Shown: positions 1 through 22,600, counted from the first letter of the stretch. The stretch: 64,000 nucleotides of DNA from Rhodosorus marinus CCMP1338 (GCA_029953675.1 JAMWBK010000001.1:2542001-2606000), one strand, 5' to 3'. Notes: generated from the sequence alone by a model not told the origin. Program-made: numbers and translations.

Positions 1-540
1 GGTAGGGCATACGGTTGAGGTGGAATCGGAGCTACCCAGATCGGTCTCGGATAGGGCACCGCCCCGCTGTATCGCAGATCTCCTCGTCTCCGATGCTGCC
101 GCCAGACGCTCAGCATATGTTGACCTCGCGATGAATTGCCCTGTGGCAAGCGCCCATCTCACGGCTGCCGCCCGTCGCCGGGGAGCAGCTGCTTCGGCCC
201 TTCGCCGCGTGAAGGAACGACGGTGTGCTGAGAGTATGGCCAGCCTGCCTCGCGCTGCGGGTCGCTCCCACCGGTTCCAACCTCTCATTATGGAAAGCTT
301 TGGTCACGTGGAAAAGTCGGGTTTGGAGTGATTGCGGAAATGTTTCACTGAGCATCCTGTTGAATACTTGGAACTTTTGTGGCGCTTAAGTGTCTCTTTG
401 TGGCGATATTCGAGCAGCATGCTTGCCGAGGCGCGCCATCGTTGCCTGGGTTTGCACGCTTCCCTCCCTAGTTCTTAGTTCCTTTTAATGGTTTGCGCAG
501 CGCTGTAGGCTATGCTAATAAAGCCAGTAAAAACCTAGTA
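1..540 (+). mobile_element. 3' fragment of CRE-like non-LTR retrotransposon family B (RLE C-terminus, 3' UTR, tail)
   Basis: ORF 20-331 has RCIADLLVSD..YVDLA (RLE PD..D motif), VKERR and FQPLIMESFG. It is interrupted by a TGA at 329-331, then followed by the stem-loop at 495-515 and an AATAAAGCC-type tail. It matches the copies at 19,000-22,700. Confidence 0.9.
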
Positions 541-1160
541 GGAAAGCTTTGGTCACGTGGAGAAGTCGGGTTTGGTGTGGTTGCGGAAATGTTTTACTGA
601 GCGACCTGTTGCATACGGTTGAGGTGGAATCGGAACTACCCAGATCGGTCTCGGAAAGGGCACCGCCCCGTTGTATCGCAGATCTCCTCGTCTCCGATGC
701 TGCCGCCAGACGCTCAGCATATGTTGACCTCGCGATCACATACCCTGTGGCAAGCGCCCATCTCACGGCTGAAGCCCGCCGCCGGGGAACAGCGGCCTCG
801 GCCCTTCGCCGCGTGAAGGAACGACGGTATGCTGAGAGTATGGACAGTATGCCTCGTGCTGAGGGTCGTTCCCACCGGTTCCAGCCTTCATTGTGGAAGG
901 CTTTGGTCACGTGGAGAAGTCGGGTTTGAAGTGGTTGCGGAAATGTTTCACTGAGCATCCTGTTGAATACTTGGAACTCTTGCGGCGCTTAAGTGTCTCT
1001 CTGTGGCGATATTCGAGCAGCATGCTTGCCGAGGCGCGCCATCGGCGCCTGGGTTTGCACGCTTCCCTACCTAGTTCTTAGCTCCTTTTAACGGTTTGCG
1101 TAGCGCTGTAGGCTATGTTAATAAAGCCTAGTAAAGCCAGTAAAAACCAGTAAATCCATC
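541..1160 (+). mobile_element. Two further family B 3' fragments (541-610 and 611-1160) joined head-to-tail
   Basis: Repeats the sequence of 1-540 and ends LGLHASLPSS*. Stem-loop at 1098-1118, then tail TTAATAAAGCCTAGTAAAGCCAGTAAAAACCAGTAAA. Confidence 0.88.
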
Positions 1161-1552
1161 CATTGCTGAGGAGCTACTACTACTACTAGTAGTGTGGTCT
1201 CTTTAGTGGTAGTGGCTGAGTGTGCTTCAGTAAGTAGTTTACAAATAGCCCGTACAGCCTTGGCTGGCCTTGGCTGCTTGGGATAGCTGGAAGGAAAGGG
1301 AGGACCGAATTTGCGAGTGGAGGTGGTGCACGCGCAACGACTGCAAAGATTTTACCGCGCCGCAAAGTGACAAATAGAAGTTATTTTTATTGCCAACAGT
1401 GTGTTGAAAACTAGAGAGCACGCAGACGCAGTGTCCCTGCCCGCTCGGCGGTTTTGAATCAGTGGTACCATGCAGCAAACAAAGTCTTCCGTTTAGCGCT
1501 GACTGAGTTCATGCGCGTAAGCTTTGCACAAAAACTGAAAAAATCGAAGGGA

Positions 1553-4500
1553 TCAGCAAGTGGCGCCATCCACAGAAACAATCCTGACATCGGTTGGGCA
1601 GCTGCTGGATTCTGCACGTGAGATAGATTTGACGGCGGAATCCTGGACAATATGGTTGAAACTTGCAACAGCAGCCACGCGGGTAAAGCTAATAACGACA
1701 TCGTCTGAGTGTTCCCAAAACAGTTTCTTTGGTTGATCGTGCCAGGTCCATGCAAGCTCGATCCTGCTTGGTAGTCGCGCGCCGGTAGTTTTCGCTTCAA
1801 ATTGAAACTCGCAGACCTTGGTTGCACTTCCGTCCCTTCTTCTGTGGTTCTCGATGATCTTCGTTGATATGCCATATGATTCACACGGCGCGGGGCTCTT
1901 TCTTGTTGCACGTTCTTGTCGGGATGCCCTTTTGGAGCTCTTTATCGTTGTCGCCGTTGCTTCTCTCGCTTCTCCACGAGAGCTGCATAGCATCGGGTGT
2001 GCAGTATCCAGGACTCGGTCCAAGGCTCCCAGAACGTACTCTCCGGTGAAGTATACTCTCACGTTTGATACATCCGAGGTGCTCGAGATCTGCGTTTCCA
2101 GCTCGTAGTTGCTGAAGGGACTCACGCGAATCGTGTTGTCCGATGAAAATTCCGCTTTCTGTGAGATGCGAGGCCCCCTCATCCACTCCTTGATCGTCTC
2201 CTCATCATCTTCCGGTGCCTCTCCGAAGTAGATAAATCGGCGCTTGAGATTTGCATGTGTAAACTTCCTCGTCAGGAATGGAAAGTCCTCGTCATCTGTT
2301 TCCATGACCCGCATCACCCCGGAGTCGCTCAAGAGCGTGATGTCGATTGTCGGCGAAATTTCTTCGTCGACACCGTCAAAGACCACATAGATTTCATCGA
2401 CGCTGGCGAGCGGGAACATCAGAGGGTTGTTCGCAGGTGCTGGACGCATATTGAAAGCGGGCTCAGTAGGGTCCACGCAAAAGTTGATGATTCCGGTCTC
2501 CAAAAAGCTGTTCCAGTTTTCCTTTCCCACCGTCGCCTCGTTCAGGTTAACGGGACCCCAGTAAGATGCGTACTTTAGGGAAAGATGATCCGTGAATACG
2601 TTAGCATACCACGACTGGAGGTCCTGCTCGAGCGAGAGAATCGAAGACGCTGCACACTTGAAGAAAAGCTTGCTGTCCAGGTCGATGATGCTCGCTTCCC
2701 ACACACAGTTGGATAGCGCGACCTTGTCCCCCGGCGATGGTAGCCCCATCATGAGGTAGTCCCTAGCGGCGACCACGTTAAATATGTCCCGGTTGAAATC
2801 TTGGACGATCATTTTATAGGTCGCTTCCTGCGCGTTGACGACGGCAGGTGCGGCTGGGTTGACCAAGCCCTCCTGTAGGCCACGTTGCGTCTCAGCCACG
2901 ACGTTTTGAAGATACATCTTGGTCGCAGTGACTTTCTGTAGCAGTTTCATATACGCAGAATACACGTTCAATACGTTAGTGCGCTGGTCAACCCACATCT
3001 GCATGTTGTCAAAACTGGTCAACAACTCCGTCGCCTCCGAGTAACAGTGCTGCTTCATATATTGGACGTAGTTATCAAGTTCCTGTCGATTCAAGTTGAT
3101 CTTAGCGGACTGTAGATCCTGGTCAAGGACACCTATTTTCTCAGCAATATCAACCGCCTCGTCGTACTCGGCGGCGTTGTACAGGTTGAGCAGGGGATCC
3201 GACAGCTGTCCCTGATAATTGGACAATGACGGGAGGTCGCCCGAGACGATGGCCGCGCTAGGATCGAAGTCGGCCCAAGGGTCACCATCACCTGCAGCGG
3301 GAATGTATTGCGTAAAGCTATCGGCCCAACCGGGAATTTTCTCGAACGGAACATCGCTGATGGCTTTTACACCTTCAAAAAAGGTCTGCACTGCAGTCGA
3401 TGCTTCAGGGATCGAGGTAATCGCGTTGACAGCCTTCACAGAACCGAAAAATCCATCCACTACGTTGAGCGCCAAGCCTACAAGCTGCATAATCCTCTGG
3501 AACCTCATTCGCTTTTGCACGTTTGCCCAACATTGGTCGATGCTCGCCTGGTTGTCTTCCATCTCCTGGCGGTACTTCTCTATTTTCGCAGCTGTGTCAA
3601 ACAGGGTTTGGTTCATCAGGAGCAACGAGCCGTAGATGTCTTCTTGTTTTGCTATCTGTGCTTTTATGCCAGTGTTTGCCTCCTCGGTTGCATTGGCCAA
3701 TAGTTGAGCAGAAAGCTCCGCATCTAGAACGCTGTTCCGAAAGGCGTCATAGTACTCTTCAATGGACTCTCCTAGCCGGCGCTTGTTCTCGAGATTTTCT
3801 AGAAGCAGTTGGAAAGAAAGCACGCTGACGTCCCCGAGAGGTTGTCCGGACGGGGAAGACATCTGGTTCGCGGTTTGAAAGATGTTCGATGCTTGGCTCA
3901 GGTACGTGAGGAATTTGTTCTTCTCTGCATCGTCTGTCGCGTTGTCGTGCCACACCTGTGCGTTGGCCATGATTTCCGCGACGAACGAGAGGATCAAGTT
4001 GTAAGCGACTTGATTCTGGTCGTTATCTTCGTTGAACATCATCATATCGAGCATCATCTTGATCTGCTGCAACCCAAAGTCCAAGTACTCTGCTGGTTTG
4101 GGATGGGTGAGATAGGCCCAATCCTGTGGATTATCCCCGACGTTATCATCATGAGGATCTACTTGAGCACCTGAAGTCAAACGGACAAACTCTCCCGGCA
4201 GCTCATCCGCGGGAATTCCATCGCTACCGTTGGCACCGGCCGCTCCAGTTGCGCCTTGGCGGTTAAATACCGGAAAGGTTATAGGGGTTTGTGTCCTCCA
4301 CGACCAAGTTTTCCGGTTCAAAACTATAAGCAAGTCTTGATAGACAACGCAGTTTGGCTGGTACGGCCCACTGCCACCGGCTCCACCTTGAGCACCGCGT
4401 CCCACATTCCCGTTGACCGACTCGAACGAGAGTAGTTCCCTGGCCTGTTCCTCAGAAAGAGTGTTATCTCCACTGCCACTCACCGAATTGGAATACATTC

Positions 4501-5377
4501 TTACTCTTCCAGCTCTACCAGCATCTCCGCCTCTTCCTCCAGCTCCTCCTGCTCCCCCGTTAGCTGGCGCCCCAGCCGCATGCAATGAGCAAAGTTGCAC
4601 CCAAAAGTTTGGTGCATTTGATGGTGGCTTTGGACATTTATTACACCACGCCTTGCCGCAGTTGTCTTTACTCGAGCTCATCCCCAGGTCGCATTTTTCT
4701 CCTTCAGATCCTTTTCCCCCGTCCCCACCATCGCCACCATTTACTCCATCAACGCCATCGCCACCGCTTGCGAGGATCCTCATCTGATATCCGTTTTCGT
4801 GTAAACTCGTGAGATTCAGATGCTTGGCGACCATGGTAAAGTGTCCTGCGTCGTGTCCGTTTTCACCATCCTGTCCCGGAATTCCCATACCCCCAGCGAT
4901 TCCTCTGCTCCCCCCCGCGGGCCGTTGTGCGGGAGTGGGAGGCTTCGCGGGGATGGGTTGAACCGCCTGCGTGTTGTCCGTTCCGTTGAGGTTAAGTGTA
5001 AAGTCGCCGTCAGATCGAATCTCGATGTAGTTCGCGATGATGGTTAAGTTTGAGCCACGCATCGAGGCTTCAACTCCGGCGCTGCCCTTAATCAGGACAT
5101 AGTAGGCGTACAACACGAACTCTCCTTCTTCTCCAATCAGATCTGTTGTCGGAGTGGACGACGACGTGAAATCCAGCGTGTAGAAAAAAGGCGCATAGAT
5201 TGTGAATTGGTTGGCCCTATCACCGCTCGCAAACCCCGACCTGATATCTAGAGACATCAAGCACATGTTATCTGACAAACCCCATCCATCGCACAGCTCA
5301 TTAACGGCAGCCTCACGTGCTCCGACAAAGGCACCCAGGCCCACGGCCAGCAGAAGAATAATCCGCATTCTCTCCAT
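1553..5377 (-). CDS. Intronless secreted ~1274-aa protein with glycine-rich repeats, long coiled coil, hydrophobic hairpin and C-terminal beta domain; putative alpha-pore-forming-toxin-like
   Basis: Uninterrupted 1353-codon ORF. The likely start is MERMRIILLLAVGLGAFVGA at 5377, a signal-peptide pattern. It carries GxxGxxG runs, a heptad-rich helical region, the LVGLALNVVDGFFGSVKAV segment and C-terminal VSPFSNYEL..DVSNVRVYFTG. The ORF is well supported; the function is inferred. Confidence 0.75.
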   Translation of the reverse strand: MERMRIILLLAVGLGAFVGAREAAVNELCDGWGLSDNMCLMSLDIRSGFASGDRANQFTIYAPFFYTLDFTSSSTPTTDLIGEEGEFVLYAYYVLIKGSAGVEASMRGSNLTIIANYIEIRSDGDFTLNLNGTDNTQAVQPIPAKPPTPAQRPAGGSRGIAGGMGIPGQDGENGHDAGHFTMVAKHLNLTSLHENGYQMRILASGGDGVDGVNGGDGGDGGKGSEGEKCDLGMSSSKDNCGKAWCNKCPKPPSNAPNFWVQLCSLHAAGAPANGGAGGAGGRGGDAGRAGRVRMYSNSVSGSGDNTLSEEQARELLSFESVNGNVGRGAQGGAGGSGPYQPNCVVYQDLLIVLNRKTWSWRTQTPITFPVFNRQGATGAAGANGSDGIPADELPGEFVRLTSGAQVDPHDDNVGDNPQDWAYLTHPKPAEYLDFGLQQIKMMLDMMMFNEDNDQNQVAYNLILSFVAEIMANAQVWHDNATDDAEKNKFLTYLSQASNIFQTANQMSSPSGQPLGDVSVLSFQLLLENLENKRRLGESIEEYYDAFRNSVLDAELSAQLLANATEEANTGIKAQIAKQEDIYGSLLLMNQTLFDTAAKIEKYRQEMEDNQASIDQCWANVQKRMRFQRIMQLVGLALNVVDGFFGSVKAVNAITSIPEASTAVQTFFEGVKAISDVPFEKIPGWADSFTQYIPAAGDGDPWADFDPSAAIVSGDLPSLSNYQGQLSDPLLNLYNAAEYDEAVDIAEKIGVLDQDLQSAKINLNRQELDNYVQYMKQHCYSEATELLTSFDNMQMWVDQRTNVLNVYSAYMKLLQKVTATKMYLQNVVAETQRGLQEGLVNPAAPAVVNAQEATYKMIVQDFNRDIFNVVAARDYLMMGLPSPGDKVALSNCVWEASIIDLDSKLFFKCAASSILSLEQDLQSWYANVFTDHLSLKYASYWGPVNLNEATVGKENWNSFLETGIINFCVDPTEPAFNMRPAPANNPLMFPLASVDEIYVVFDGVDEEISPTIDITLLSDSGVMRVMETDDEDFPFLTRKFTHANLKRRFIYFGEAPEDDEETIKEWMRGPRISQKAEFSSDNTIRVSPFSNYELETQISSTSDVSNVRVYFTGEYVLGALDRVLDTAHPMLCSSRGEAREATATTIKSSKRASRQERATRKSPAPCESYGISTKIIENHRRRDGSATKVCEFQFEAKTTGARLPSRIELAWTWHDQPKKLFWEHSDDVVISFTRVAAVASFNHIVQDSAVKSISRAESSSCPTDVRIVSVDGATC

Positions 5378-7387: not shown

Positions 7388-7546
7388 ACCGGTTCCAGTC
7401 ATTCATTGTGGAAAGCTTTGGTCACGTGGATAAGTCGGGTTTAGAGTGGTTGCGGAAATGTTTTGCTGAGCATCCTACTGAATATTTGGCGCTAGGCGTT
7501 TAAGTGTCTCCCTTTGGCGATATTCCAGCGACAAAAAAAAAAAAAA
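7388..7546 (+). mobile_element. Family B RLE fragment ending in a non-templated A14 tract, fused to the 5' end of element A
   Basis: 7388-7532 matches family B ORF sequence (compare ~21251-21398) with one small deletion. It stops at CCAGCGAC, where B continues ATGCT; A14 follows at 7533-7546. Confidence 0.85.
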
Positions 7547-7798
7547 GAAGCAGTTTTTGGTTTCGTGAGGGTGTATGGTGCTGGCTTTTGGTGGTTTTGA
7601 GTCGCAATTGTGTTCTTCGGTGGGAGGCGCTTCTTTCTGCAGCCTTTCCCCCGCATCTTCTAGTGGTGTGGTGCGTGCTGGGGGTTGCTAGCGCCTCTTG
7701 GAGGTCGTGGTGGTTTTTCTTTGGTTGCAAACGTTGGGAACAAGTTCTCTTTTTGGGGGTTTCGTGGGGGAATCGGTTTTTCACACCTTCCAATCTTT

Positions 7799-9097
7799 AT
7801 GGTTGGGGTTTCCCCACCCATTCCGGCGGACGGAGCCGTTCTCTCAGCGCGCGTGGAGCTCTGCGTGGGCGGGTTTAGTACCGCGGCCACCCTCACGGAC
7901 TGCGCTGACGAGTTAGCCCATGGGATCTGCTCGAAACTGACGAGTCTTCTTGTGACTGCCTCCCAGGAACACCGCCTGCCCCTGCTGATCGCCTATTTGG
8001 AGCGCTTCTCCGCCTCCGCGCCTGCCCCATACCCCCCGGTGCCCGTCCCCGCGGATCCGCACGGTACAGCGGGGCCTGCCTCCACCCGACCCGAGCGCTC
8101 CGCTCCGGTCATTCCTGATTCCGACTGGCCTACCCCTATTCAAGGACAGACGCCTCCTGGGCCCGCGTCGGGCCCGAATCCTGCTCCCTCCAGTGCCCCA
8201 CGTGCGACCTATTCGCAGGTCCTACGCAGGGGCTCTTCTGAACAACGCACGACGGCAATGGTGCGTATGATGCCACAACACATCCCTATTGACTCTTCTC
8301 GCCAACTATCTCCGTTCCACTTTGTTTGGATGACGAACGTGCGTCCCCAGACCCCCTCTCGTGGTCGGGGCCGCGCGCCCGTCCACTACCGCGATTTTCG
8401 CGACACCATGGCTTCCTCCCTTGGGGTCGCCCCGTCTGAATTCCTATATGTGGACTTCACGGGCCCTCATGCCTGTTTTCTTGTTACTGACTCGGCTTAC
8501 CAGTTCCTTCAATCGCTTGTAACCACCCCCGCGCCCCAGCGCTCTGCTCTGGCCAACATGATACTGACTCGTCCTCATGTCTCTTTGTTTGTCGAGTTCG
8601 ATCGTTTTGACGCCGGCTGGGTTCCACCGTCGGCCTTGCAAAACCTGGATGCCTCGCAGGCTTCGGTTGTCGCGCTACACACTCATGCGGCGCGGCTCTC
8701 GCGCATACAGGCCAGCCTCTTCGCGCGTTTTCCTCCTCGCGGGGTCCTCCGCACCGCGCTAGAGGCCTTCCTCTCCACTGAGGCCACCCTGCTGGAAGCC
8801 CACCCTGCGTTTGACCTTCTGCCGCCGACTCTTGAGCACCCTTCCTCCCCTCGCCCTGTCTCCGAGGCTCGTGACACCGACATGGCAGAAGCACCATCGG
8901 CCTCTCCGAATCCGCTGGCTCTGGACACCCTCAGTCAAGACTCCGCTGCTGAAAACCCTGTGTCTACTTTCTTCAGGTCTTTTAGTTCCTTCGTGCGCCC
9001 TCCACGTAAGCGTCGTGCGGCTCCTGAGCCTCCCTCCGAGGCACCTCCTCCGGATATTCGATCTGCCTTCCCGACTGAGGGGAGGCCCGATGTCTGA
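7799..9097 (+). CDS. ORF1 of element A (~432 aa), Pro-rich flanks around an RRM-like core
   Basis: Open frame 7685-9097 with first ATG at 7799. The segment FVWMTNV..YRDFRDTMASSLG..FLYVDF..HACFLV..AYQFLQSL has an RNP2/RNP1-like beta-alpha-beta-beta-alpha pattern. Its stop overlaps the ORF2 start (ATGTCTGA, 9090-9097). Confidence 0.7.
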   Translation: MVGVSPPIPADGAVLSARVELCVGGFSTAATLTDCADELAHGICSKLTSLLVTASQEHRLPLLIAYLERFSASAPAPYPPVPVPADPHGTAGPASTRPERSAPVIPDSDWPTPIQGQTPPGPASGPNPAPSSAPRATYSQVLRRGSSEQRTTAMVRMMPQHIPIDSSRQLSPFHFVWMTNVRPQTPSRGRGRAPVHYRDFRDTMASSLGVAPSEFLYVDFTGPHACFLVTDSAYQFLQSLVTTPAPQRSALANMILTRPHVSLFVEFDRFDAGWVPPSALQNLDASQASVVALHTHAARLSRIQASLFARFPPRGVLRTALEAFLSTEATLLEAHPAFDLLPPTLEHPSSPRPVSEARDTDMAEAPSASPNPLALDTLSQDSAAENPVSTFFRSFSSFVRPPRKRRAAPEPPSEAPPPDIRSAFPTEGRPDV

Positions 9098-12000
9098 GTC
9101 TTCCTCCTCCGCGTGCGTGTCGTCCCGGTTACCCCTGTTTACCAGTGACCGCTCAGCCTGGCTTGAGCGTGTTCTCTCGTGGTTTTCGCACCTTGTCGCC
9201 TCCTACCCGGACGGTTCCCTTCCCCTTTGTCGTCAGAGCACGGCCGTACGGCTCCCTCGTCGACTTCATAAGCCCCTAGGATTGGTGTTGGATTTTCTCT
9301 GGCAGCAGGTGGCCGCGAACCCTCACTGCTCTCTTCGCTGGGAACTCTTGTTCTTTTTTCCCCGCCTCGTGCTCACATCCTCTACCGTCCCCCTCAACCC
9401 ACATCCTCGCCGGGTCCACCCTCGCCGAAAACTGCAAATGTTCCTTTCCGGCGACTTTGAGGACCTCGAACGTCTTTATTTCGCTTCTCTCTCTTCCTTT
9501 TCTCCTAGTGCTTCCTCAGCTTTTAGGTCTTCTCGACAGAATCGGGCGCGTCACGCGGTGGCAGGCGGTGATCTGCGGCGGGCAGCCGGGATCCTCCAGC
9601 AGCGGCAACCTGTGGTTCCATACTCCGATGATCTTTCTTCACCGCTCCGTTTGCTCTTTCCCTCGGAAGGCTCCCTTGGGACTCCTCGTTTGAATCAGTG
9701 TTGGAAGAGTACCGCGCCGCGCCACATCCCAGTGCGCGGTTAGTGGTCAATCTGGAGGCGGTGCGTGAGTTGGTTCATGATGCTCCGAAGGGCCGTTCCC
9801 CAGGGCCCTCGGGGCTGCGGGTGGAATATCTCCGTTTCTTAAGTGATGAAGGTTTGAAGGCGTTGGCGTGGGTGGTCGAAGCGCTTGTGAATGGTGATCC
9901 CCTGTGTGAGTGTGCGTGGTTCTTGGTCGGGCGTTCGCAGTTGTGTCTGCTTTCGAAGCCCGGCCACACGGCCTCGAGCCTTGCTATTCGCCCTATTGGC
10001 CTGGTTGAGGTGGTCCGCAAATTGGCGGCGCGATGGTTAGTGAAAATCCTGGTTCCCGAATCCCGCCGTTTCTTTGGGCACGTGCAGTTAGGCGTGGGCT
10101 ATCGTGGTGGCTGTGAGTTGTTGTCTGTTTTACTCCGTTCGGAAATGGCGTACTCCCCAGATTCTGGGCTCCTCTCTGTAGATTTTACCAATGCGTTCAA
10201 CCGCGTCTCTCGTCCGGCTCTCATGCACGTGGTGCGCGAAGTCTTCCCTGTAGGCTTTCCCTTTGTTAGTAGACTTTATTCTCCGCTTGGTCGTGGGGCT
10301 ACCTATGACACCCTTGGCGCTTCCTCACACACGTTTGCGGCGCGCACAGGGGTACAACAGGGTGATCCCTTGTCCCCTTTCCTACATGCCTGTGGACTAC
10401 AACTCGTCTTGCTTTGTCTTCGCTCCGAATTCCCGCAGGTTCGTACGGTTGCATACCACGACGACGTGTGCCTCCTGGGGCCCCCTGATACTCTAGCACT
10501 CGCTTATGATCGTCTCCGCTCCTTGGCTTCGCGGGTTGACCTGGAGGTTAATCATCACAAATCGTTCTACTGGGGAGGTGTAGCTGCACAAGAGCAGCAG
10601 GTACCTGCGTCGTTCCAGGATATTTGGAGACCGGATGGTTTTGTCCACTTAGGCATCCCCTACGGGTCGCCGTCCTTCGTTGAAGGCGAGTTGCTGCAGC
10701 TCCTCGGTAAGCACAGACAGCTGGTTGCAGAGCTTCGACGGCTACCTCCGGGCTTTCTCCAGTGCTCGTTGTTGCTGTTTCGGTATTGTTGCAGTCAGCG
10801 GTTAACCTATTGGCTTCGCTCACTTCCAACTCATTGGGGCCGGTGGTTGGCCACTCGTGCGGATGCTGAAAGTTTCCGTGACCTGGGGTATTTTCTCGAT
10901 GAAGAGCTGAGCGCTCTGCCGCGACCCACCTGTGATGTTGTGCGCGCCCAGGTAGGCCTCCCATTGCGATTGGGGGGACTGGGCCTCTGCAATCGTGTTG
11001 TGGTCCAACCTTCAGCCGCAGTAGGGGCCTGGGGAACCGCACTTCCCACTTTGAGCAGCTTGGGTATCTCGAAGTTCCGCAATTTGATGGCGAGCCTCTC
11101 GCGGGGTGTCTTGCTTCCCAGCGTACCGGAAAGCGCCCAAGACTTGTTTCTGGAGCTCCAAACCGCCCTGAATTCCTGTACTAGTCTCCCCGAAACCGTT
11201 CAACCCCGTCTTCCTGACTGGCGAGCTGTATTTGACCGCTCTCGAGGCTCCGCCCCGGGGATTCGTCCTGCGCCTGAACCTGTTCTAGGGGAGATTGACC
11301 CAGTGGTTGCCGCAGAAGAAGAAGTTCCAGTTGATCCTCCTGATGATTCCCAGCGCGCTGGGAGCCGAGCTCAAGCACGCACGGATGCGCTGCAAAATAT
11401 CCTTTCTTGGGACTTGCACCGTGCTGCATATGGCCGACTCCTCGCGCAGGTGGTCTCATCTTCTCGCGCTCGCGCCCGCCTACGTAGTCTTGGAGGGGTT
11501 ATTAGCTCTCAGTGGCTCATGACCGTACCAGCCTTTCCGCCACTCACACTGTCGGATTTCGAAGTGCGTACTTCACTGCGCTTATACCTCGGCTTACATC
11601 AGCCCCCTTGGCCGTACGAGATGGGTTCGTCGTGCCCTCTCTGCTCTCAGACTGAAGACAACGCAGATTTTGGCGCCCACCTGCTCGCTAGTTGCCCGGC
11701 GGTGAAAGGTGCTCGAACCCGCCGCCACACACGGATCTTGAACCTGTTATACCGGGAACTTCGGCCTATAGTCCGGCAAGCCGGTCTGGAAATCGAACGT
11801 GAGAAACCTTTACCCGTCGCGGACTTTCAAAATGATGAACGCCGTGTAGCCGACCTGGTGATCACCTGTGACGACAGCCGCCGTACCACATACGTTGATC
11901 TTGCTGTTCCTAACCCTCAAGCTAGTCGTTATCTCCCGGCTGCGGGGGAGCGCCGTGGATCTGCCGCCGCCAGCATGAGACGCCGCAAAGAGATCAAATA

Positions 12001-12232
12001 CGCGGGGGCTTTGTCTTCCCCTGGTGTTCGTGCTTCGGCACTAGCACATCGCTTGGTACCCCTGATCATTGAGTGCTTTGGGTTCATGGACTCTGTTGGT
12101 TCTCGCTGGCTTCGGGAGTTGTTCCGCGAACGCCCTGACCGTCTTCAATCGTTGTTTACCCGCTTAAGTTTCCTGCTGTGGCGCATGAATGCCGCTTTGA
12201 TGTTGGAGGCGCGAGTACTTCGCCGCGCTTAG
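9090..12232 (+). CDS. ORF2 of element A: reverse transcriptase, zinc knuckle and RLE (~1047 aa after correcting one frameshift near 9670)
   Basis: Motifs: RSPGPSGLRVEYL, IRPIGLVEVVRKLAA, VDFTNAFN, GVQQGDPLSP (CRE-type), AYHDDV, LPLRLGGLGL, CPLC..HLLASC..RTRRH, VADLVI..YVDLAV, RKEIKY, PLIIECFG. The N-terminal part lies in the frame of ORF 8811-9743. Confidence 0.92.
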
Positions 12233-12296
12233 TCTTTTTTTCCCCTCGGGGTTTTTTTTTCAGCCTCCGATTAAACCATTCATTCAAATAGAAAGT

Positions 12297-12984: not shown

Positions 12985-15030
12985 TCACAGGGTCCAGCCT
13001 TTCATTGTGGAAAGCTTTGGCATGTGGAGAAGTCAAGCTTGGAAAGCTGCGTAAATGTTTGACCGAACATCCTAGAACAATATCTAGTGCTCCTCCGCCG
13101 TCTAAGCGCTTTCTGGCGGAATTCTAGCAAGATGCTCGCGGAGCCGCACCACCGCCGCCTGGGTTTACATGCTCCTCTCCCTAGGTCCTAGTTTCCTTTT
13201 ATATTTTGCGTAGCGCATCAAGCTACGTTAGTAAAACCACATAATGTTGGTTGGTTCTGTCATTCACACATGAATTTGCTTCCCCAGGCGCGTACTGATC
13301 GGAGAAAAGTGGAAACATAATAGTTTCACTCCGAAGGTCTTTATTCTAGTCAGGACGCTGTCCAGACATGCACCGTGTCACATGCTCTTTTTAAGATACT
13401 AGAGTTTCGTAAGAGTTAACCGACGCGGATGACAATTTCATTATTTTTAGGTTTCCTGACCATCCTGTTGAATAGCTGCGACTGATAGGCCGGTTAGGAG
13501 TCGCCCTCTGGCGATACTCTGCCAGCATGCTCGCCGAGGCGCGCAATCGGCGCCTGGGTTTGCACGTGGCTAGAATATCGCCAGAAAGCGATACTTAACC
13601 GGCGGAGCAGCATATATTTTTCAGGGTGTTCGGTGAAACATTTGCACAGCCACTCGAAGCTTGACTTTTCCAGATGCCCAAAGATTTCCGCAATGAAAGG
13701 CTGGAACCTGTGAGACCGCCCTCTTCCCGAGAAAGAGTGGCCATGCTCTCAGCGTACCGCCGTTCCTTCACACGGCGAAGTAGAGAAGCTGCTGCCCCCC
13801 CCCCGGGGAGAGCGCCAGAAGGGAGATTGGTACCGGCCACGGGGGATGTGACAGCGAGGTCCACATATACTGAGCGTCTGGCGACTTTGTCCGATACGAG
13901 GAGATCTGCGATGCAACTCGGAGGGATGTTTGCGGGTGCTCGAGGCAGTGCCGATTTCACCTCGACCGTGTAGCCAACTCTTGTCAAGTGGTCGCTGAGG
14001 ATGTATTTTAGGCGCGTGTGTCGCTTCTTGCGATGACCTCGCAGCAGTCCACACGATCCCAGGAAATGGTACCCACATCCGTCGATACGACTCGCACAAC
14101 CTTGGCAGAAGGAAGGGCGATTGGAATGCCAAGGGGCCTGTGGCAAACTCAGGTAGTTCCGTGGCGCGGTCCGGAACTAAGAGGCGTCTAGTCCTTGGGC
14201 CGATGACGAGGGCAGAGTGGTTAGCCATAGGTGGGATAGATTACCTCCCATAGCCCGTAGACGAGCCGAGGTGGTAGGCGGTGTAAGTGAAGAATTGACG
14301 CAAGATTGCGGGAACAGCACTGTGTTGGTCCCAAGTGAGGCTATGTTGGATCACATCAGTGCGTGAGCTCCATGATCTGCTCATATACACGGGAAATCGG
14401 CGGTAGGTGACCCGGGGCTGGCTTCCCCACCGTCGCTCTAACCGAGGATTCCACTGAAACCTCATTGCGTGGGGCATCTGAAAATTCAAGCTTGGAGTGG
14501 CTGCGCAAATGTTTCACCGAACATCCTCAAGCATATCCGGCGGCCCCCCGGCCGTTTAAGTGTCACTCTCTGGCGGTATTCCAGCACAGGCTCGCCGAGG
14601 CGCCCCACCGCCGCCTACGCTTGTGCCAGGTGGCTCGGGGTTTTGCCAAGTGGGTTGGGTTTTTCGCTGTTTACGACCCCCCCTATTAAACCCCCCTGTT
14701 TTCGCGGGTTTAACCACTTCTGGATCGTAAACGTCGAAAAACCCAACCCACTTGGCACAACCCTAGTAAAACCACCACCCCGTTGACCGAGTGCTGGCGG
14801 GCGATGGGGACGCCAGCCCCAGGTAACCCGCGGCAGATTACCCGGGTTTGAACATACCGTGGAGCTCATGCACTGATGTGATTCAACATAGACTCACCTG
14901 GGACCAACACAACGCAGCTCTCGCACTGTTGCTCAACTCTCCACTCTCGCCGCCAACAACCGTTGGCTCGTCTGCGCGGCATGGGAGGTCAGCCATCTCA
15001 CCTGTGGTTAAGCACTCTGCCATCCTCACC
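12985..15030. mobile_element. Jumble of diverged family B fragments in both orientations (approx. 12985-13240 +, 13455-13575 +, 13595-14460 -, 14465-14640 +, 14860-15030 +)
   Basis: ORF 13595-14146(-) has CQGC..GYHFLGSC..RHTRLK and CIADLLVSD..YVDLAV. The plus-strand pieces repeat the WLRKCFTEHP..LWRYSS region. A stem-loop variant lies at 13208-13228. Confidence 0.8.
14637..14764. repeat. ~40-bp imperfect inverted repeat around a ~48-bp loop
   Basis: GGGGTTTTGCCAAGTGGGTTGGGTTTTTCGCTGTTTACGA (14637-14676) against TCGTAAACGTCGAAAAACCCAACCCACTTGGCACAACCCT (14725-14764), about 4 mismatches. Confidence 0.8.
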
Positions 15031-15032
15031 TG

Positions 15033-17790
15033 GACTTTACTAGCATAGCCTGAAGCGCTACGCAATGTGTGAAGATGAACTAATAACTAGGGAGGGAAGC
15101 ATGCAACCCCAGGCGCCGATGGCGCGCCTCGGAAAGCATGTCGCTGGAATATCGCCAAAGGTAGACACTTAAACGCCTCAAGAGCGCCAAATATTCAGTA
15201 GGATGCTCGGCAAAACATTTCCGCAACCACCCTAAACCCGACTTATCCACGTGACCAAAGCTTTCCACAATGAATGGCTGGAACCGGTGGGAGCGACCCT
15301 CAGCGCATGGCAGACTGGCCATGCTCTCAGCATACTGTCGTTCCTTAACTCTTCGAAGGGCTGAAGCCGCGGCCCCCCGGCGGCGGGCGGCTGCGGTGAG
15401 GTGGGCGCTGGCCACGGGGCAGGTAGTCGCAAGGTCCACATATGTTGAGCGTCTGGCAGCAGCGTCGGAGACGAGGAGATCGGCTATACAACGGGGCGGT
15501 GCAGAGTCCGAGATTGATCTGGGCAGCTCCGACTCAACCTCAACCGTATGCCCTATCCGAGTCAAAAATTCGCTGAGGATGTACTTGAGGCGAGTGTGAC
15601 GCCTCGTACGGAGACCTCTCAATAGTCCGCAGGAACCCAGGAAGTGGTAGCCACAAGCGTCAATCCGGCTCTCACATCCCTGACAGAAAGACGACAGAAA
15701 GACGCCGATTAGAGTGCCACGGAGGCTGTGGCAAACCGAGATAGATCCGTGCGGCAGAACGGAACTGGAAAGCATCGAGACGATGACTCAATGACGACGG
15801 TAGAGTGGTAAAAAAACCACAAGTGCGAGAGGTGGCCTCCCATGCCGCGGAGACGAGCGGCAGTGGTAGGCGGTGTGAGAGGAGAATTGAGCATGACTGT
15901 GTGAGCGGCACTGTGTTGGCCCCAGGTGAGGCTATGTTGAATCACATCAGTGCGGGAGCTCCACAATCGGCTCAAACCCGAGTAGTCTGCAACAGGTGAC
16001 CCGGGGCTAGCCTCTCCGTCATCGGCAAGAACTCGGTCGAGGGAGAATCCTCAATCGCTTCAGCTCGTCCCCATAACAGCTCCCTCCAGTAACGAAAGCG
16101 GGACCTATTTGCGTCCGGCACGGCGTTGCACCCCTGAACGCGTGTTGAAGACCATCATAAATTGTCAAAAGCGGGGGCGGCAGGGTCACTGGATCCTCGT
16201 TGGTTAAAGCTCGAGCCAAGAGGCAGGCACTTCGCATCTGGAAGGTCACCAACGTTCGCAGCGCGGTAGCCCAGGAGGCAACCGCCGCTGGCGAGCATAC
16301 CAGCCCACGGTCTGCGACGCCGAATCCCCTAATCGCAACGGTAGAGCGATCTGTGCACGAATCAAGTCCCTGTCGGGAGCAGCTTCAAGATCGAGGGGCT
16401 CATCCAAGAGCGTTCCCCAGTGTTGCAGGGTCATCTCGTCGGCTTTAGCCGCGATCCACGAGCCCCAAGCTGGAGGCAGGCTGCGCAACCAGTAGTTGAG
16501 TCTGGGACCGGCACAAAAGCGGGAAAGCAAGCAAGCCGATTGCAGCATGCTGTCGGGTAGGCGCTAAATGGCGTCGGTGAGTTGCTTGTGCCGTGCCAAA
16601 ACTCGCTCGCAGGATGCTTGGACAAAGTTGTCAGTCCCCAATCCGACGCCGTGGGGTTTGAACCCTTCACGTTCGCTGATTAGTCGCAGAGTGGGTGGCA
16701 GAGAGGCCAGCGACACGTCCCTCGGGGGGAGAAGGCGACATTTTTCTGTTTCCACAGTCAAACCGACGCGACGTGCAATCGCTTCGATCTCGGTCAGCCC
16801 CCTAGCCAGGGTGTCAGGGGTGCCCAGCAATGTTACGTCATCGTGGTAAGGCGCAGATTCGAAGATCCGAGACCTCAGTCGAAAGACGTAAAAGTACGAG
16901 CTGTAGGGCACAGGCATGAAGAAGAGGTCCGCAAGGGTCGCCTTGTTGGACGCCAGTATGTGCTTGAAAAACAGTGCCCTCCGTTGTCAAGTAGGGGAGG
17001 CTCTCCCCTCCGTAAATACCCGATAGAAACGGCCACGCCCCCGGAAACACCGGTCGGAGCACCTCTAGCGCATGCGTCCGCGACACGCTGTTGAATGCGT
17101 TCCGGAAATCAACCACCAAGACTCCCAGCTCCGGCCTACTGGCGCGTTCTAGCTCGATCCCATGGGTGATCAGTTCGCAACCCCCAGAAAATCCCGCCAT
17201 AAAAGCTGTGACGCGCTGGCGAAGGCGCTGGCATAGCCACCTCCCGACTAACTTCCGTAGGCTCTCCACCATCCCGATCGGCCGGAGACGCGGGTGGGCC
17301 GGCTGGTGGTCAGGTTTCGTGAGCAAGCAAAGCTGTGCCTGCCGGAGATGTTCCCATGGCGCAGACGCACCCGATACGCCCTGGAACAACTTGTTAAGGA
17401 TCCTCAGAAGCGCGCTCTGGCCAGGCTGGCTCTGGGCCTGCAATAGCTCTGTTCTTAGTCCGGAGGGTCCGGGGCAGCGTCCCCGACGCGAGGTACGAAG
17501 CAAATCCTCCAGGTCAGACTCACTGAGGGTCAGGTCGATGCGAAACCTGGCCAACTCCGGACGGTCCAAGAATACCTCGAATTCAGGGGACAAGTCCACG
17601 TCGGACTCAGGGAACAAAGACGACACCGTCTGGGCGAGACTATCATCGTAGGGTAGGACAGGCGCCTGGCCCTCCAAAACCCGCGCCGCTCGACTTAAAT
17701 CGCCCACTGCTACCAATTTCCGTACTCGAGCCGGCACGGGCGACACTGTGCCATGCCGAGTCCGACGGGCGGATGGTGCTGACGACGCCA
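15033..17790 (-). mobile_element. Longest family B copy (5'-truncated, RT through RLE, disrupted)
   Basis: ORF 16838-17791 has RGRCPGPSGLRTELL, LRPIGMVESLRKLVG, VDFRNAFN and GVQQGDPCGP. A 1-nt insertion precedes YHDD. Further nonsense and frameshift lesions follow, then the RLE ORF 15080-15775. Confidence 0.92.
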
Positions 17791-17827
17791 AATAGCTGCG
17801 CTGTAGCCTGAAGCGCTACGCAAGGCA

Positions 17828-19685
17828 ACGATGACGTAACATTGCTGGGCACCCCTGACACCCTGGCTAGGGGGCTGACCGAGATCGAAGCGATTGCACG
17901 TCGCGTCGGTTTGACTGTGGAAACAGAAAAATGTCGCCTTCTCCCCCCGAGGGACGTGTCGCTGGCCTCTCTGCCACCCACTCTGCGACTAATCAGCGAA
18001 CGTGAAGGGTTCAAACCCCACGGCGTCGGATTGGGGACTGACAACTTTGTCCAAGCATCCTGCGAGCGAGTTTTGGCACGGCACAAGCAACTCACCGACG
18101 CCATTTAGCGCCTACCCGACAGCATGCTGCAATCGGCTTGCTTGCTTTCCCGCTTTTGTGCCGGTCCCAGACTCAACTACTGGTTGCGCAGCCTGCCTCC
18201 AGCTTGGGGCTCGTGGATCGCGGCTAAAGCCGACGAGATGACCCTGCAACACTGGGGAACGCTCTTGGATGAGCCCCTCGATCTTGAAGCTGCTCCCGAC
18301 AGGGACTTGATTCGTGCACAGATCGCTCTACCGTTGCGATTAGGGGGATTCGGCGTCGCAGACCGTGGGCTGGTATGCTCGCCAGCGGCGGTTGCCTCCT
18401 GGGCTACCGCGCTGCGAACGTTGGTGACCTTCCAGATGCGAAGTGCCTGCCTCTTGGCTCGAGCTTTAACCAACGAGGATCCAGTGACCCTGCCGCCCCC
18501 GCTTTTGACAATTTATGATGGTCTTCAACACGCGTTCAGGGGGTGCAACGCCGTGCCGGACGCAAATAGGTCCCGCTTTCGTTACTGGAGGGAGCTGTTA
18601 TGGGGACGAGCTGAAGCGATTGAGGATTCTCCCCTCGACCGAGTTCTTGCCGATGACGGAGAGGCTAGCCCCGGGTCACCTGTTGCAGACTACTCGGGTT
18701 TGAGCCGATTGTGGAGCTCCCGCACTGATGTGATTCAACATAGCCTCACCTGGGGCCAACACAGTGCCGCTCACACAGTCATGCTCAATTCTCCTCTCAC
18801 ACCGCCTACCACTGCCGCTCGTCTCCGCGGCATGGGAGGCCACCTCTCGCACTTGTGGTTTTTTTACCACTCTACCGTCGTCATTGAGTCATCGTCTCGA
18901 TGCTTTCCAGTTCCGTTCTGCCGCACGGATCTATCTCGGTTTGCCACAGCCTCCGTGGCACTCTAATCGGCGTCTTTCTGTCGTCTTTCTGTCAGGGATG
19001 TGAGAGCCGGATTGACGCTTGTGGCTACCACTTCCTGGGTTCCTGCGGACTATTGAGAGGTCTCCGTACGAGGCGTCACACTCGCCTCAAGTACATCCTC
19101 AGCGAATTTTTGACTCGGATAGGGCATACGGTTGAGGTTGAGTCGGAGCTGCCCAGATCAATCTCGGACTCTGCACCGCCCCGTTGTATAGCCGATCTCC
19201 TCGTCTCCGACGCTGCTGCCAGACGCTCAACATATGTGGACCTTGCGACTACCTGCCCCGTGGCCAGCGCCCACCTCACCGCAGCCGCCCGCCGCCGGGG
19301 GGCCGCGGCTTCAGCCCTTCGAAGAGTTAAGGAACGACAGTATGCTGAGAGCATGGCCAGTCTGCCATGCGCTGAGGGTCGCTCCCACCGGTTCCAGCCA
19401 TTCATTGTGGAAAGCTTTGGTCACGTGGATAAGTCGGGTTTAGGGTGGTTGCGGAAATGTTTTGCCGAGCATCCTACTGAATATTTGGCGCTCTTGAGGC
19501 GTTTAAGTGTCTACCTTTGGCGATATTCCAGCGACATGCTTTCCGAGGCTCGCCATCGGCGCCTGGGGTTGCATGCTTCCCTCCCTAGTTATTAGTTCAT
19601 CTTCACGCCTTGCGTAGCGCTTCAGGCTATGCTAGTAAAGTCGGGGGGAGTAAAGTCCAGTAAAGTCCAGTATAGCTAATAAAGC
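17828..19685 (+). mobile_element. Family B copy truncated at the RT catalytic motif; inverted near-identical duplicate of 15033-16844
   Basis: Begins at (H)DDVTLLGTPD. The ORF track gives identical peptides on opposite strands, e.g. the 231-aa ORFs 15080-15775(-) and 18900-19595(+). Confidence 0.92.
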
Positions 19686-22600
19686 AGCTGAGAGCATGGC
19701 CAGTCTGCCTTGCGCTGAGGGTCGCTCCCACCGGTTCCAGCCATTCATTGTGGAAAGCTTTGGTCACGGCGATAAGTCGGGTTTAGAGTGGTTGCGGAAA
19801 TGTTTTGCTGAGCATCCTACTGAATATTTGGCGCTCTTGAGGCGTTTAAGTGTCTCCCTTTGGCGATATTCCAGCGACATGCTTTCCGAGGCGCGCCATC
19901 GGCGCCTGGGGTTGCATGCTTCCCTCCGTAGTTATTAGCGAGCGAGTTTTGGCACGGCACAAGCAACTCACCGACGCCATTGAGCACCTACCCGACAGCA
20001 TGCTGCAATCGGCTTGCTTGCTTTCCCGCTTTTGTGCCGGTCCCAGACTCAACTACTGGTTGCGCAGCCTGCCTCCAGCTTGGGGCTCGTGGATCGCGGC
20101 TAAAGCCGACGAAATGACCCTGCAACACTGGGGAACGCTCTTGGATGAGCCCCTCGATCTTGAAGCTGCTCCCGACAGGGACTTTATTCGTGCACAGATC
20201 GCTCTACCGTTGCGATTAGGGGGATTCGGCGTCGCAGACCGTGGGCTGGTATGCTCGCCAGCGGCGGTTGCCTCCTGGGCTACCGCGCTGCGAACGTTGG
20301 TGACCTTCCAGATGCGAAGTGCCTGCCTCTTGGCTCGAGCTTTAACCAACGAGGATCCAGTGACCCTGCCGCCCCCGCTTTTGACAATTTATGATGGTCT
20401 TCAACACGCGTTCAGGAGGTGCAACGCCGTGCCGGACGCAAATCGGTCCCGCTTTCGTTCCTGGAGGGAGCTGTTATGGGGACGAGCTGGAAGCGATTGA
20501 GGATTGTCCCCTCGACCGAGTTCTTGCCGATGACGGAGAGGCTAGCCCCGGGTCCCCTGTTGCAGACTACCCGGGTTTGAGCCGATTGTGGAGCTCCCGC
20601 ACTGATGTGATTCAACATAGCCTCACCCGGGGCCAACACAGTGCCGCTCACACAGTCATGCTCAATTCTCCTCTCACGCCGCCTACCACTGCCGCTCGTC
20701 TCCGCGGCATGGGAGGCCACCTCTCGCACTTGTGGTTAACCACTCTACCGTCGTCATTGAGTCATCGTCTCGATGCTTTCCAGTTCCGTTCTGCCGCACG
20801 GATCTATCTCGGTTTGCCACAGGCTCCGTGGCACTCTAATCGGCCGTCTTTCTGTCAGGGATGTGAGAGCCGGATTGACGCTTGTGGCTACCACTTCCTG
20901 GGTTCCTGCGGACTATTGAGAGGTCTCCGTACGAGGCGTCACACTCGCCTCAAGTACATCCTCAGCGAATTTTTGACTCGAATAGGGCATACGGTTGAGG
21001 TTGAGTCGGAACTGCCCAGATCCATCTCGGACTCTGCACCGCCCCGTTGTATAGCCGATCTCCTCGTCTCTGACGCTGCTGCCAGACGCTCAACATATGT
21101 GGACCTTGCGATTACCTGCCCCGTGGCCAGCGCCCACCTCACCGCAGCCGCCCGCCGCCGGGGGGCCGCGGCTTCAGCCCTTCGAAGAGTTAAGGAACGA
21201 CGGTATGCTGAGAGCATGGCCAGTCTGCCTTGCGCTGAGGGTCGCTCTCACCGGTTCCAGCCATTCATTGTGGAAAGCTTTGGTCACGTGGATAAGTCGG
21301 GTTTAGAGTGGTTGCGGAAATGTTTTGCTGAGCATCCTACTGAATATTTGGCGCTCTTGAGGCGTTTAAGTGTCTCCCTTTGGCGATATTCCAGCGACAT
21401 GCTGTCCGAGGCGCGCCATCGGCGCCTGGGGTTGCATACTTCCCTCCCTAGTTATTAGTTCATCTTCACGCCTTGCGTAGCGCTTCAGGCTATGCTAGTA
21501 AAGTCCAGTTATTAGTTCATCTTCACGCCTTGCGTAGCGCTTCAGGCTATGCTAGTAAAGTCTTCAACACGCGTTCAGGAGGTGCAACGCCGTGCCGGAC
21601 GCAAATCGGTCCCGCTTTCGTTCCTGGAGGGAGCTGTTATGGGGACGAGCTGAAGCGATTGAGGATTCTCCCCTCGACCGAGTTCTTGCCGATGACGGAG
21701 AGGCTAGCCCCGGGTCCCCTGTTGCAGACTACCCGGGTTTGAGCCGATTGTGGAGCTCCCGCACTGATGTGATTCAACATAGCCTCACCTGGGGCCAACA
21801 CAGTGCCGCTCACACAGTCATGCTCAATTCTCCTCTCACGCCGCCTACCACTGCCGCTCGTCTCCGCGGCATGGGAGGCCACCTCTCGCACTTGTGGTTA
21901 ACCACTCTGCCGTCGTCATTGAGTCATCGTCTCGATGCTTTCCAGTTCCGTTCTGCCGCACGGATCTATCTCGGTTTGCCACAGGCTCCGTGGCACTCTA
22001 ATCGGCCGTCTTTCTGTCAGGGATGTGAGAGCCGGATTGACGCTTGTGGCTACCACTTCCTGGGTTCCTGCGGACTGTTGCGAGGTCTCCGTACGAGGCG
22101 TCACACTCGCCTCAAGTACATCCTCAGCGAATCTTTGACTCGGATAGGGCATACGGTTGAGGTTGAGTCGGAACTGCCCAGATCCATCTCGGACTCTGCA
22201 CCGCCCCGTTGTATAGCCGATCTCCTCGTCTCCGACGCTGCTGCCAGACGCTCAACATATGTGGACCTTGCGATTACCTGCCCCGTGGCCAGCCCCCACC
22301 TCACCGCAGCCGCCCGCCGCCGGGGGGCCGCGGCTTCAGCCCTTCGAAGAGTTAAGGAACGACGGTATGCTGAGAGCATGGCCAGTCTGCCTTGCGCTGA
22401 GGGTCGCTCTCACCGGTTCCAGCCATTCATTGTGGAAAGCTTTGGTCACGTGGATAAGTCGGGTTTAGAGTGGTTGCGGAAATGTTTTGCTGAGCATCCT
22501 ACTGAATATTTGGCGCTCTTGAGGCGTTTAAGTGTCTCCCTTTGGCGATATTCCAGCGACATGCTTTCCGAGGCGCGCCATCGGCGCCTGAGGTTGCATG

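Follow-up and report, generated by a model that had tools for sequence, protein, structure and literature searches.

The locus

The stretch of DNA analysed here, hereafter called the window, comprises 64,000 nucleotides from the unicellular red alga Rhodosorus marinus CCMP1338 (GCA_029953675.1 JAMWBK010000001.1:2542001-2606000). Its minus strand carries a single-exon gene at 1553..5377, located between fragments of retroelements. The encoded protein has 1274 residues and starts with a predicted signal peptide, and a large part of its predicted structure resembles TcA, the A subunit of the bacterial Tc (ABC) toxins.

The reading frame consists of 1274 codons and a stop, with no internal stop codon; the other five frames of the same interval contain 29-67 stops. 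If the base composition is used to set the stop probability, at 0.046 per codon, the natural logarithm of the probability that a frame of this length stays open by chance (ln P) is approximately -60. This is the longest open reading frame (ORF) of the window, and the gene occurs there only once. An earlier reading of the same DNA (the original prediction) had described an intact frame among decayed repeats. The absence of stops, the value of ln P and the retroelement debris on both sides bear this out.

The frame remains open further upstream, as far as an ATG at position 5614, which would yield a product of 1353 amino acids (aa). This start was rejected: coding periodicity is missing from the 79 additional codons, and in every relative the protein begins with the signal peptide. 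The start at 5377 (MERMRIILLLAVGLGAFVGA) is therefore the correct one. Coding periodicity, measured as an excess of GC content at third over second codon positions (GC3 > GC2), is weak in the last ~150 codons and in the glycine-rich part of the gene. For the last ~150 codons this raised the suspicion of non-coding read-through, which was discarded because the tail is conserved in all paralogues. The GC3 of the gene is 0.59, compared with 0.50-0.65 in neighbouring genes, and its base composition is thus host-like. This composition and the presence of long ORFs without introns agree with an origin from a unicellular red alga. We conclude that this is a real, intact gene encoding a secreted protein. 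It was apparently missed by the deposited annotation of GCA_029953675.1.

Domain architecture of the protein

Two models were calculated with AlphaFold2 (AF2). Model 1 covers aa 75-1274 and is based on a 9-row alignment, and model 2 covers aa 405-1135 with a 4-row alignment. The mean predicted local distance difference test score (pLDDT) of model 1 is 49, with values of 70-87 in the N-terminal strands, the Gly blocks and the tail domain, and of ~35 in the helices. Model 2 has a mean pLDDT of 54 and a predicted template modelling score (pTM) of 0.43; its helices reach a length of 88 residues, and a mixed beta domain comes after them. The layout derived from the models, from hydropathy and from conservation is given in Table 1.

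Table 1. Position of the gene, of the regions of its product and of the flanking retroelements in the window
Feature	Position	Strand	Basis
Complete single-exon gene, 1274 codons + stop (stop 1553-1555)	1553..5377	-	ORF analysis; collinear end to end with R. marinus paralogues
Predicted signal peptide, aa 1-20 (MERMR / IILLLAVGLGAFVGA / probable cleavage after VGA)	5318..5377	-	Hydropathy; equivalents in paralogues
N-terminal beta-strand region, aa 21-150, with conserved CxGWGLxxxxC loop and strands such as LTIIANYIEI	4928..5317	-	Strands of AF2 model 1 with pLDDT 70-83; conserved in paralogues and Andalucia protein
Gly-triplet domain, aa 151-390; beta strands alternate with five blocks, each of 4-8 Gly-x-x triplets	4208..4927	-	Gly columns invariant in 5 sequences; pLDDT 70-87 in blocks 1-3
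Cys-rich insert, aa 229-263, between Gly blocks 2 and 3; 5 Cys (C229, 240, 245, 248, 263)	4589..4693	-	Sequence; Cys-bearing insert at the same place in all relatives
Predicted alpha-helical region, aa 420-935, corresponding to the TcA-like helical part and channel helices	2573..4120	-	AF2 helices; Foldseek alignment to TcA over the whole aa 405-1135 query
Longest predicted helix, aa 553-640 (88 residues), running into the hydrophobic tip	3458..3721	-	AF2 model 2
Hydrophobic Gly-containing tip, aa 626-652 (FQRIMQLVGLALNVVDGFFGSVKAVNA), a loop that may insert into membranes	3422..3502	-	Hydropathy; hydrophobic stretch kept in paralogues, Andalucia protein and spider protein
C-terminal beta-rich domain, aa 936-1125, the most conserved part (FFKCAA, NFCxDPTEPxF, VSPFSNY, VSNVRVYxTG), placed like the TcB-binding domain of TcA	2003..2572	-	AF2 model 2; Foldseek; conservation
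Low-complexity linker, aa 1126-1163, Pro/Thr-rich in paralogues	1889..2002	-	Sequence; pLDDT < 50
Tail beta domain, aa 1164-1274 (~110 aa), 4 Cys	1556..1888	-	All strands, pLDDT 60-82; conserved in paralogues and short R. marinus proteins P0004, P0006/P0011
Two ~604-bp tandem copies of the 3' end of a retroelement without long terminal repeats (non-LTR), part coding for the endonuclease domain	1..1144		Repeat analysis
Retroelement copy with ORF1-like frame (7685-9097) and reverse transcriptase + C-terminal endonuclease ORF (9698-12232)	7388..12263	+	Pfam RVT_1 E = 8e-11; repeats

The signal peptide has discernible n-, h- and c-regions, which, judged by hydropathy, are kept in three paralogues. 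Apart from it, the hydropathy profile shows a single hydrophobic stretch (aa 629-650), at the tip. All the elements named in the original prediction, namely the signal peptide, Gly-rich runs, Cys-rich insert, long helices, hydrophobic stretch and C-terminal beta domains, are found by sequence analysis or in the AF2 models.

The N-terminal 400 residues have no match in Pfam or, by sequence or Foldseek, in the PDB and constitute a novel domain. They contain the five Gly-x-x blocks, at aa 156-174, 205-226, 274-290, 328-337 and 375-387, as well as a Pro-rich stretch. No long uninterrupted Gly-X-Y run of the collagen type is present in the blocks, each of which has only 4-8 triplets, and no Pfam family of the Collagen type is matched; the SclB model of the NCBIfam search reaches 9 bits against a cut-off of 325. 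AF2 models the Gly blocks confidently as neither helix nor strand, which suggests, by analogy, that they may form helices of the polyglycine-II type packed against a sheet. Bundles of polyglycine-II or polyproline-II (PPII) helices occur in the snow-flea antifreeze protein, in the glycine-rich domain of ALK/LTK and in the adhesin tips of phage gp38. The algal protein shares with such bundles the short Gly-x-x runs with strictly conserved Gly, but its blocks alternate with beta strands and are interrupted by the Cys-rich insert. No bundle of this type is among the top 50 PDB matches of model 1 in Foldseek. Further background on bundles of PPII helices is available (PMC11364801).

Two short R. 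marinus MMETSP transcript products (P0006/P0011, 153-166 aa) contain only the Pro/Thr-rich linker and the tail beta domain, with 25-28% identity to the tail of the window protein. Either they derive from the 3' end of a further paralogue, or the tail domain exists as a protein by itself.

Similarity of the predicted structure to TcA subunits

In a Foldseek search of the PDB with model 2, all 20 matches at E <= 1e-3 are TcA subunits, with E values from 5.7e-6 to 6.5e-4 and probabilities of 0.95-1.00. The alignments extend over 618-751 columns, approximately the whole query. The matched entries are XptA2, TcdA1 in its prepore, intermediate and pore states, XptA1, YenTcA, two TcdA4 structures and TcaA-TcaB, so that every solved Tc toxin is represented. 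The best match other than TcA is to an unrelated protein (E = 1.4e-2, probability 0.35), and generic coiled coils follow it. With model 1, the top three PDB matches are again TcAs: YenTcA (1.4e-3), XptA2 (5.8e-3) and TcdA1 (2.2e-2).

The suggestion of the original prediction that the protein resembles the A subunits of Tc toxins and is an alpha-pore-forming protein is thereby supported at the level of the predicted structure, with TcAs as all of the 20 best matches and also in first place for the full-length model. The structure search had been named in advance as the test of this suggestion; it did not point to a non-toxin fold, and TcAs stand at the top with both models.

We consider the Foldseek result good evidence because it is specific, extends over the full length of the query, is reproduced with two models and fits the linear anatomy of the protein. 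As a match of predicted structures it is strong but not final evidence, and the models make it quite probable that the fold-level likeness to TcA is real.

A family of paralogues in R. marinus

Sequence relatives of the protein were sought exhaustively with HMMER among 1.84 billion representative proteins, and only eight hits were obtained. The best of these, P0010, is the complete product of an R. marinus MMETSP transcript. It has 1264 aa and its own signal peptide, is 36-37% identical to the window protein, and is collinear with it from the CxGWGLxxxxC loop to the ...SCPTxxRxVS end.

In the genome, uninterrupted single-exon ORFs for three further members are found on contig 4 (L002:5596-9408, 1270 aa), contig 12 (L003:4593-8399, 1268 aa) and contig 5 (L004:8001-11792, 1263 aa, 92% identical to P0010). 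The corresponding deposited models have 657 aa, 500+132 aa and 328 aa, respectively. The family in R. marinus therefore has no fewer than four intact members, each encoded by a single exon and starting with a signal peptide, and the window copy is the most divergent among them, with 36% identity to the rest.

The ratio of nonsynonymous to synonymous substitution rates (dN/dS) is 0.15-0.19 among the three other paralogues, indicating purifying selection. Between the window copy and these paralogues dS is saturated, and dN is 0.66-0.68. The window copy keeps the invariant Gly and Cys columns of the family and its conserved motifs. The family is conserved, under selection and partly expressed. 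A recent arrival of the gene, one of the possibilities raised by the original prediction, is contradicted by its place among at least four paralogues whose identity has fallen to 36% and by its host-like GC3.

The deposited R. marinus gene models fragment the family and none of them matches the window copy. Comparative studies that rely on these models would be blind to it.

Relatives in a jakobid and a giant virus

Outside the alga, the family is represented by a protein of the jakobid Andalucia godoyi (P0003), which matches in BLASTP both in its N-terminal region (7e-11) and in its helical/beta C-terminal region (7e-22). The Gly columns are invariant from alga to jakobid. After the family part, P0003 continues with fibronectin type III (FN3) repeats, a transmembrane helix and a short tail. 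The FN3 repeats and the membrane anchor occupy the position of the algal tail domain, which suggests that the C-terminal end is the attachment end of the family.

A second relative was found by structure. In the viral structure library BFVD, model 1 matches A0A481Z1I0 from Mimivirus LCMiAC02 in Foldseek (E = 8.8e-22, probability 1.00, 1143 columns), and the next match follows at E = 7.6e-4 with a probability of 0.25. LCMiAC02 is a Mimiviridae bin assembled from deep-sea sediment metagenomes (PMC6401483). The viral protein is the sole match that spans both the N-terminal and the TcA-like parts of the algal protein. It differs in having 1032 aa and only 14% identity, and the relation is known from the structure match alone, as the HMMER sequence search did not recover it. 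A pattern search with the conserved C-terminal domain in contigs from viruses and metagenomes gave no further members.

A protein of the spider Nephila pilipes (P0008; GFT70513.1, 2162 aa) was also considered. At its N-terminus lies a P-loop G domain, and after it come blocks of Gly triplets that include a Cys-rich insert, long helices, then a hydrophobic hairpin and, towards the C-terminus, a beta region bearing a motif of the SPY..W... type. By eye it is collinear with the family, and it is a possible relative. We did not accept it as an established member, the HMMER match (E = 6.3e-4) being confined to the Gly-rich part and hhalign supporting only the hydrophobic-tip stretch (E = 0.1).

Among the 1.84 billion representatives there is no bacterial sequence relative. 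The only prokaryote-like HMMER match, P0007, was rejected as a match between collagen-like repeats. The horizontal acquisition proposed in the original prediction thus finds no support as far as a bacterial source is concerned. Some transfer is possible in view of the patchy eukaryotic distribution and the giant-virus homologue, and it may have involved giant viruses.

Comparison with Tc toxins and other systems

The A subunits of Tc toxins consist of a helical domain, a channel with hydrophobic tip loops and a C-terminal TcB-binding domain, in this order (PMC11435725, PMC6795518). The algal protein shows the same order, with a helical region leading into long antiparallel helices with a hydrophobic tip and ending in a C-terminal beta domain of ~190 aa. 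It differs from TcA in several respects. Similarity by sequence is not detectable, and with 1274 aa the protein has half the size of TcA (~2500 aa). No Ig-like receptor-binding or neuraminidase-like domain is detected with Pfam or Foldseek, the Gly-triplet/beta domain being present instead. After the funnel-like domain, where TcA ends, the algal protein continues with the linker and a further beta domain. It also has a eukaryotic signal peptide, and members of the family occur in a red alga, a jakobid and a giant virus instead of bacteria.

In TcAs, the channel together with the TcB-binding domain forms a conserved core and the shell is variable (PMC6795518). Some of them, for example Yp-TcaATcaB, are devoid of receptor-binding domains (PMC6795518). 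A conserved core with a variable shell fits a relative that keeps only the core. Furthermore, TcAs alone form functional pores (PMC6795518), which makes a pore former without a cocoon plausible. Bacterial TcA is the nearest known relative of the algal protein, which falls outside the TcA class by sequence, by its shell domains and by known partners.

Teneurins are eukaryotic proteins built on a part of the Tc machinery, as the algal family would be, and the Andalucia relative is, as they are, a membrane-anchored surface protein. In contrast to the algal family, which resembles the translocator (A) and has no YD/RHS repeats, teneurins derive from the cocoon (B/C) and are adhesion receptors. In the literature searched, Tc toxins are treated as bacterial and teneurins are the only eukaryotic derivatives discussed; nothing was found on TcA-like proteins of eukaryotes or giant viruses.

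The toxins of the ClyA family and the tripartite toxins (NheA, Hbl, AhlB, SmhA/B, MakA) have long helical bundles whose hydrophobic hairpin inserts into membranes; similar long helices, with a hydrophobic hairpin that may insert, are predicted for the algal protein. They are much smaller and have neither a C-terminal beta domain nor a Gly-triplet domain.

Evidence against a TcA-type protein

Several observations weigh against the assignment. By sequence, no known family is found. The TcA families sought were the TcB-binding domain, the neuraminidase-like domain and the VRP1/N-terminal domain. In Pfam, none of them is matched at E <= 1 with the window protein, at E <= 0.1 with three relatives or at E <= 10 with six family members. 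NCBIfam gives nothing, and searches of PDB sequences, with single sequences as well as profiles, return only noise and no TcA chain. TcA subunits work with a TcB-TcC partner, an RHS/YD cocoon whose genes usually lie nearby. A domain of the RHS/YD type, as in TcB/TcC, is absent from the 10 long window ORFs scanned with Pfam. As for the paralogue loci, the gene calls on record list no Pfam family; these loci were checked only for retroelement ORFs.

The models call for similar caution. Both have low confidence, with pLDDT values of ~35-65 in the helical part and alignments of only 4-9 sequences. The TcA matches of model 2 have query-normalised TM-scores of 0.14-0.20, short of the > 0.5 asked of a global superposition on a TcA protomer, with a root-mean-square deviation of ~60 A and identities of 8-12%. 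The similarity thus concerns the local order of structural states in the model and not a global superposition. A low TM-score is expected if the monomer model misplaces the long helices, and the fold is not proven by such models; long helices are prone to spurious structure matches. Finally, no protein with at least 50% identity to the window copy is present among the 1.84 billion representatives, no gene with its exact product is on record, and no transcript or protein model of it was found.

The original prediction had based the resemblance to TcA on two motifs, VSVLSF before the long helices and the terminal SPFSxYxL..DVSxVxVxFxG pattern, and had also compared them with insecticidal proteins of the PtIP-83 type from ferns. 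The motifs themselves are real and conserved in the family, the former as xVSxxSF and the latter, as SPFSNY...VSNVRVYxTG, within the most conserved block. They cannot be called TcA motifs, because the resemblance to TcA is undetectable by sequence. A PtIP-83-like match did not appear in any search.

Alternative explanations

The protein could be an extracellular adhesin or a glycoprotein of the matrix or cell wall, in which the Gly-triplet domain, a coiled-coil stalk and the beta domains serve adhesion, and the TcA match would be a long-helix artefact of a poor model. Collagen-like Gly-x-x blocks, the Pro/Thr-rich linker of the paralogues and the FN3 repeats and membrane anchor of the Andalucia relative (automatically named 'Twitchin') are in line with such a role, as are the weak Foldseek matches of the small beta domains to chitin-binding, pilin and BslA-type sandwiches, and the low model confidence and TM-scores leave room for an artefact. 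We nevertheless regard this explanation as unlikely, since the coiled coils of SMC, dynein and MukB score at least 1000-fold worse than each of the 20 TcA entries, TcA is the outcome with two different models, and the conserved hydrophobic tip within the helical region would have no role in a stalk. The Gly blocks, moreover, are too short for a collagen helix and give no Pfam hit of the Collagen type. The second alternative is a virus-derived protein for membrane fusion or entry, in which the hydrophobic loop of the long helical hairpin would serve as fusion loop; giant viruses and their eukaryotic hosts would have exchanged the family. It would account for the full-length structural homologue in Mimivirus LCMiAC02 and for a eukaryotic distribution that is patchy and takes in a red alga and a jakobid, possibly also a spider. 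It would also agree with the membrane anchor of the Andalucia protein, and the family profile matches arenavirus GP2 and coronavirus S2' very weakly (E 0.06-0.8). These matches to viral fusion proteins are at noise level, however, and no fusion protein is present among the Foldseek PDB matches, whereas all TcAs are. The algal proteins have no membrane anchor, which fusogens need, and the alga keeps at least four paralogues, with the above dN/dS among the three that are measurable. This origin thus appears distinctly improbable.

An alpha-pore-forming toxin of the ClyA/tripartite type (Hbl, Nhe, Ahl, Smh, MakA) would equally have a hydrophobic hairpin between long helices, and NheA (E = 0.11), SmhA/B (0.14-0.2), AhlB (0.7-0.9) and MakA (0.57) are indeed listed among the Foldseek matches. 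With E values of 0.1-0.9, probabilities of 0.2-0.4 (<= 0.41) and partial coverage of the query, these matches are at noise level and ~10^4 times worse than those of TcA. The algal protein is, in addition, 3-4 times longer and has a conserved C-terminal beta domain that the ClyA family is missing, so that we give this type hardly any credence. The last explanation concerns the window copy alone, which might be an unexpressed relic, a divergent paralogue among retroelements that has not yet acquired a stop. The missing record of its product, its position as the most divergent member and the weak coding periodicity in the Gly-rich part and the tail would be expected of a relic. Missing annotation says little here, as the other paralogues are badly annotated too. 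A frame that stays open against the odds calculated above, the retention of all invariant Gly/Cys columns and family motifs, and a dN to the paralogues well below the saturated dS speak against a relic and make it quite improbable.

Retroelement surroundings and other features of the window

The retroelement fragments on either side of the gene (Table 1) confirm that it is embedded in a retroelement domain, as had been proposed. The tandem units at 1-1144 are 92-94% identical to each other and code for the part with the putative restriction-like endonuclease domain; in a non-LTR element it is unusual to find 3' ends arrayed in tandem. Many further full or partial copies occur at 13500-22950, 28900-31100, 33750-36300 and 45440-46906. 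They belong to at least two related lineages of reverse transcriptase/endonuclease, lie in both orientations and have protein identities of 29-98%. Approximately one third of the window is derived from retroelements.

Two of the three other paralogue loci also have the same non-LTR retroelement directly beside the gene, at 2825-4096 and 8775-16256 of L003 and at 203-3088 and 11949-12149 of L004. Their retroelement ORF1 and reverse transcriptase sequences are 95-99% and 97.5% identical to those of the window, respectively; L002 contains only a small fragment. The proximity of paralogues and retroelement could reflect a compartment rich in transposable elements or a preference for insertion near these genes. 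The contingency-type locus suggested by the original prediction finds no support, notable though this shared neighbourhood is.

The remainder of the window contains few recognizable features. A tRNA-Ser gene with anticodon GCT at 29133-29216 (+) is the sole RNA gene found (Rfam 60.5 bits). An ORF of 608 aa that starts with ATG, at 25718-27544 (+), has a coding-like periodicity and is without a match in Pfam. Segments that appear hydrophobic lie near its residues 430-500, and a membrane protein is the probable product. A pentatricopeptide repeat (PPR) gene of 950 aa is located at 38103-40955, and its product is identical to one on record for contig JAMWBK010000001.1. The ORF at 51652-54621 (+), of 989 aa, has no Pfam match, and that at 61745-62677 (+), of 310 aa, has a sub-threshold match to a homeodomain (E = 8e-4, 19.6 bits against a cut-off of 22.9).

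A possible mechanism and its implications

The reading we favour, with moderate confidence and on the basis of the models, is that R. marinus secretes a pore-forming protein, of which the C-terminal ~730 residues are related to the A subunit of Tc/ABC toxins, distantly and at the level of structure. From the analogy with TcA we infer oligomerisation, pore formation and a target; cargo might conceivably pass through. In such a mechanism, the protein would enter the secretory pathway and be held at, or released from, the cell surface, where it probably oligomerises into a soluble prepore in the manner of TcA, whose prepore is a bottle-shaped homopentamer with a stretched linker and a 3_1 trefoil knot. 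The N-terminal Gly-triplet domain, the tail domain or both would bind a surface, and a trigger would free the long helices. The hydrophobic tips could then insert into a foreign membrane, giving rise to an alpha-helical pore, with the C-terminal end keeping the device on or near the surface of the producer and the tip pointing outward. We likewise infer toxin activity and an anti-grazer role: the protein would likely serve to damage grazers, parasites or competitors, either on contact or after release.

A more far-reaching proposal, which we put forward tentatively, is that these proteins represent the first TcA-type translocator outside bacteria. They would form an ancient family of red algae, jakobids and Mimiviridae, possibly also of arthropods, in which the channel and funnel core of Tc toxins is combined with a new Gly-triplet recognition domain, possibly of the polyglycine-II type, and with a C-terminal tether to the surface of the producer. 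Such a protein might pierce membranes on contact, as a self-contained device that operates without a TcB/TcC cocoon and serves defence, predation or the entry of a virus, and giant viruses would be a likely vehicle of its patchy spread.

If this is true, the translocator half of the Tc system would extend to eukaryotes and a giant virus, and one would have to ask which task an A subunit has when there is no cocoon. The family would also provide a natural channel core of much smaller size (~140 kDa) for mechanistic study. It would constitute the first membrane-piercing device of this kind in eukaryotes and in a giant virus, and a candidate means by which unicellular algae or giant viruses may breach foreign membranes.

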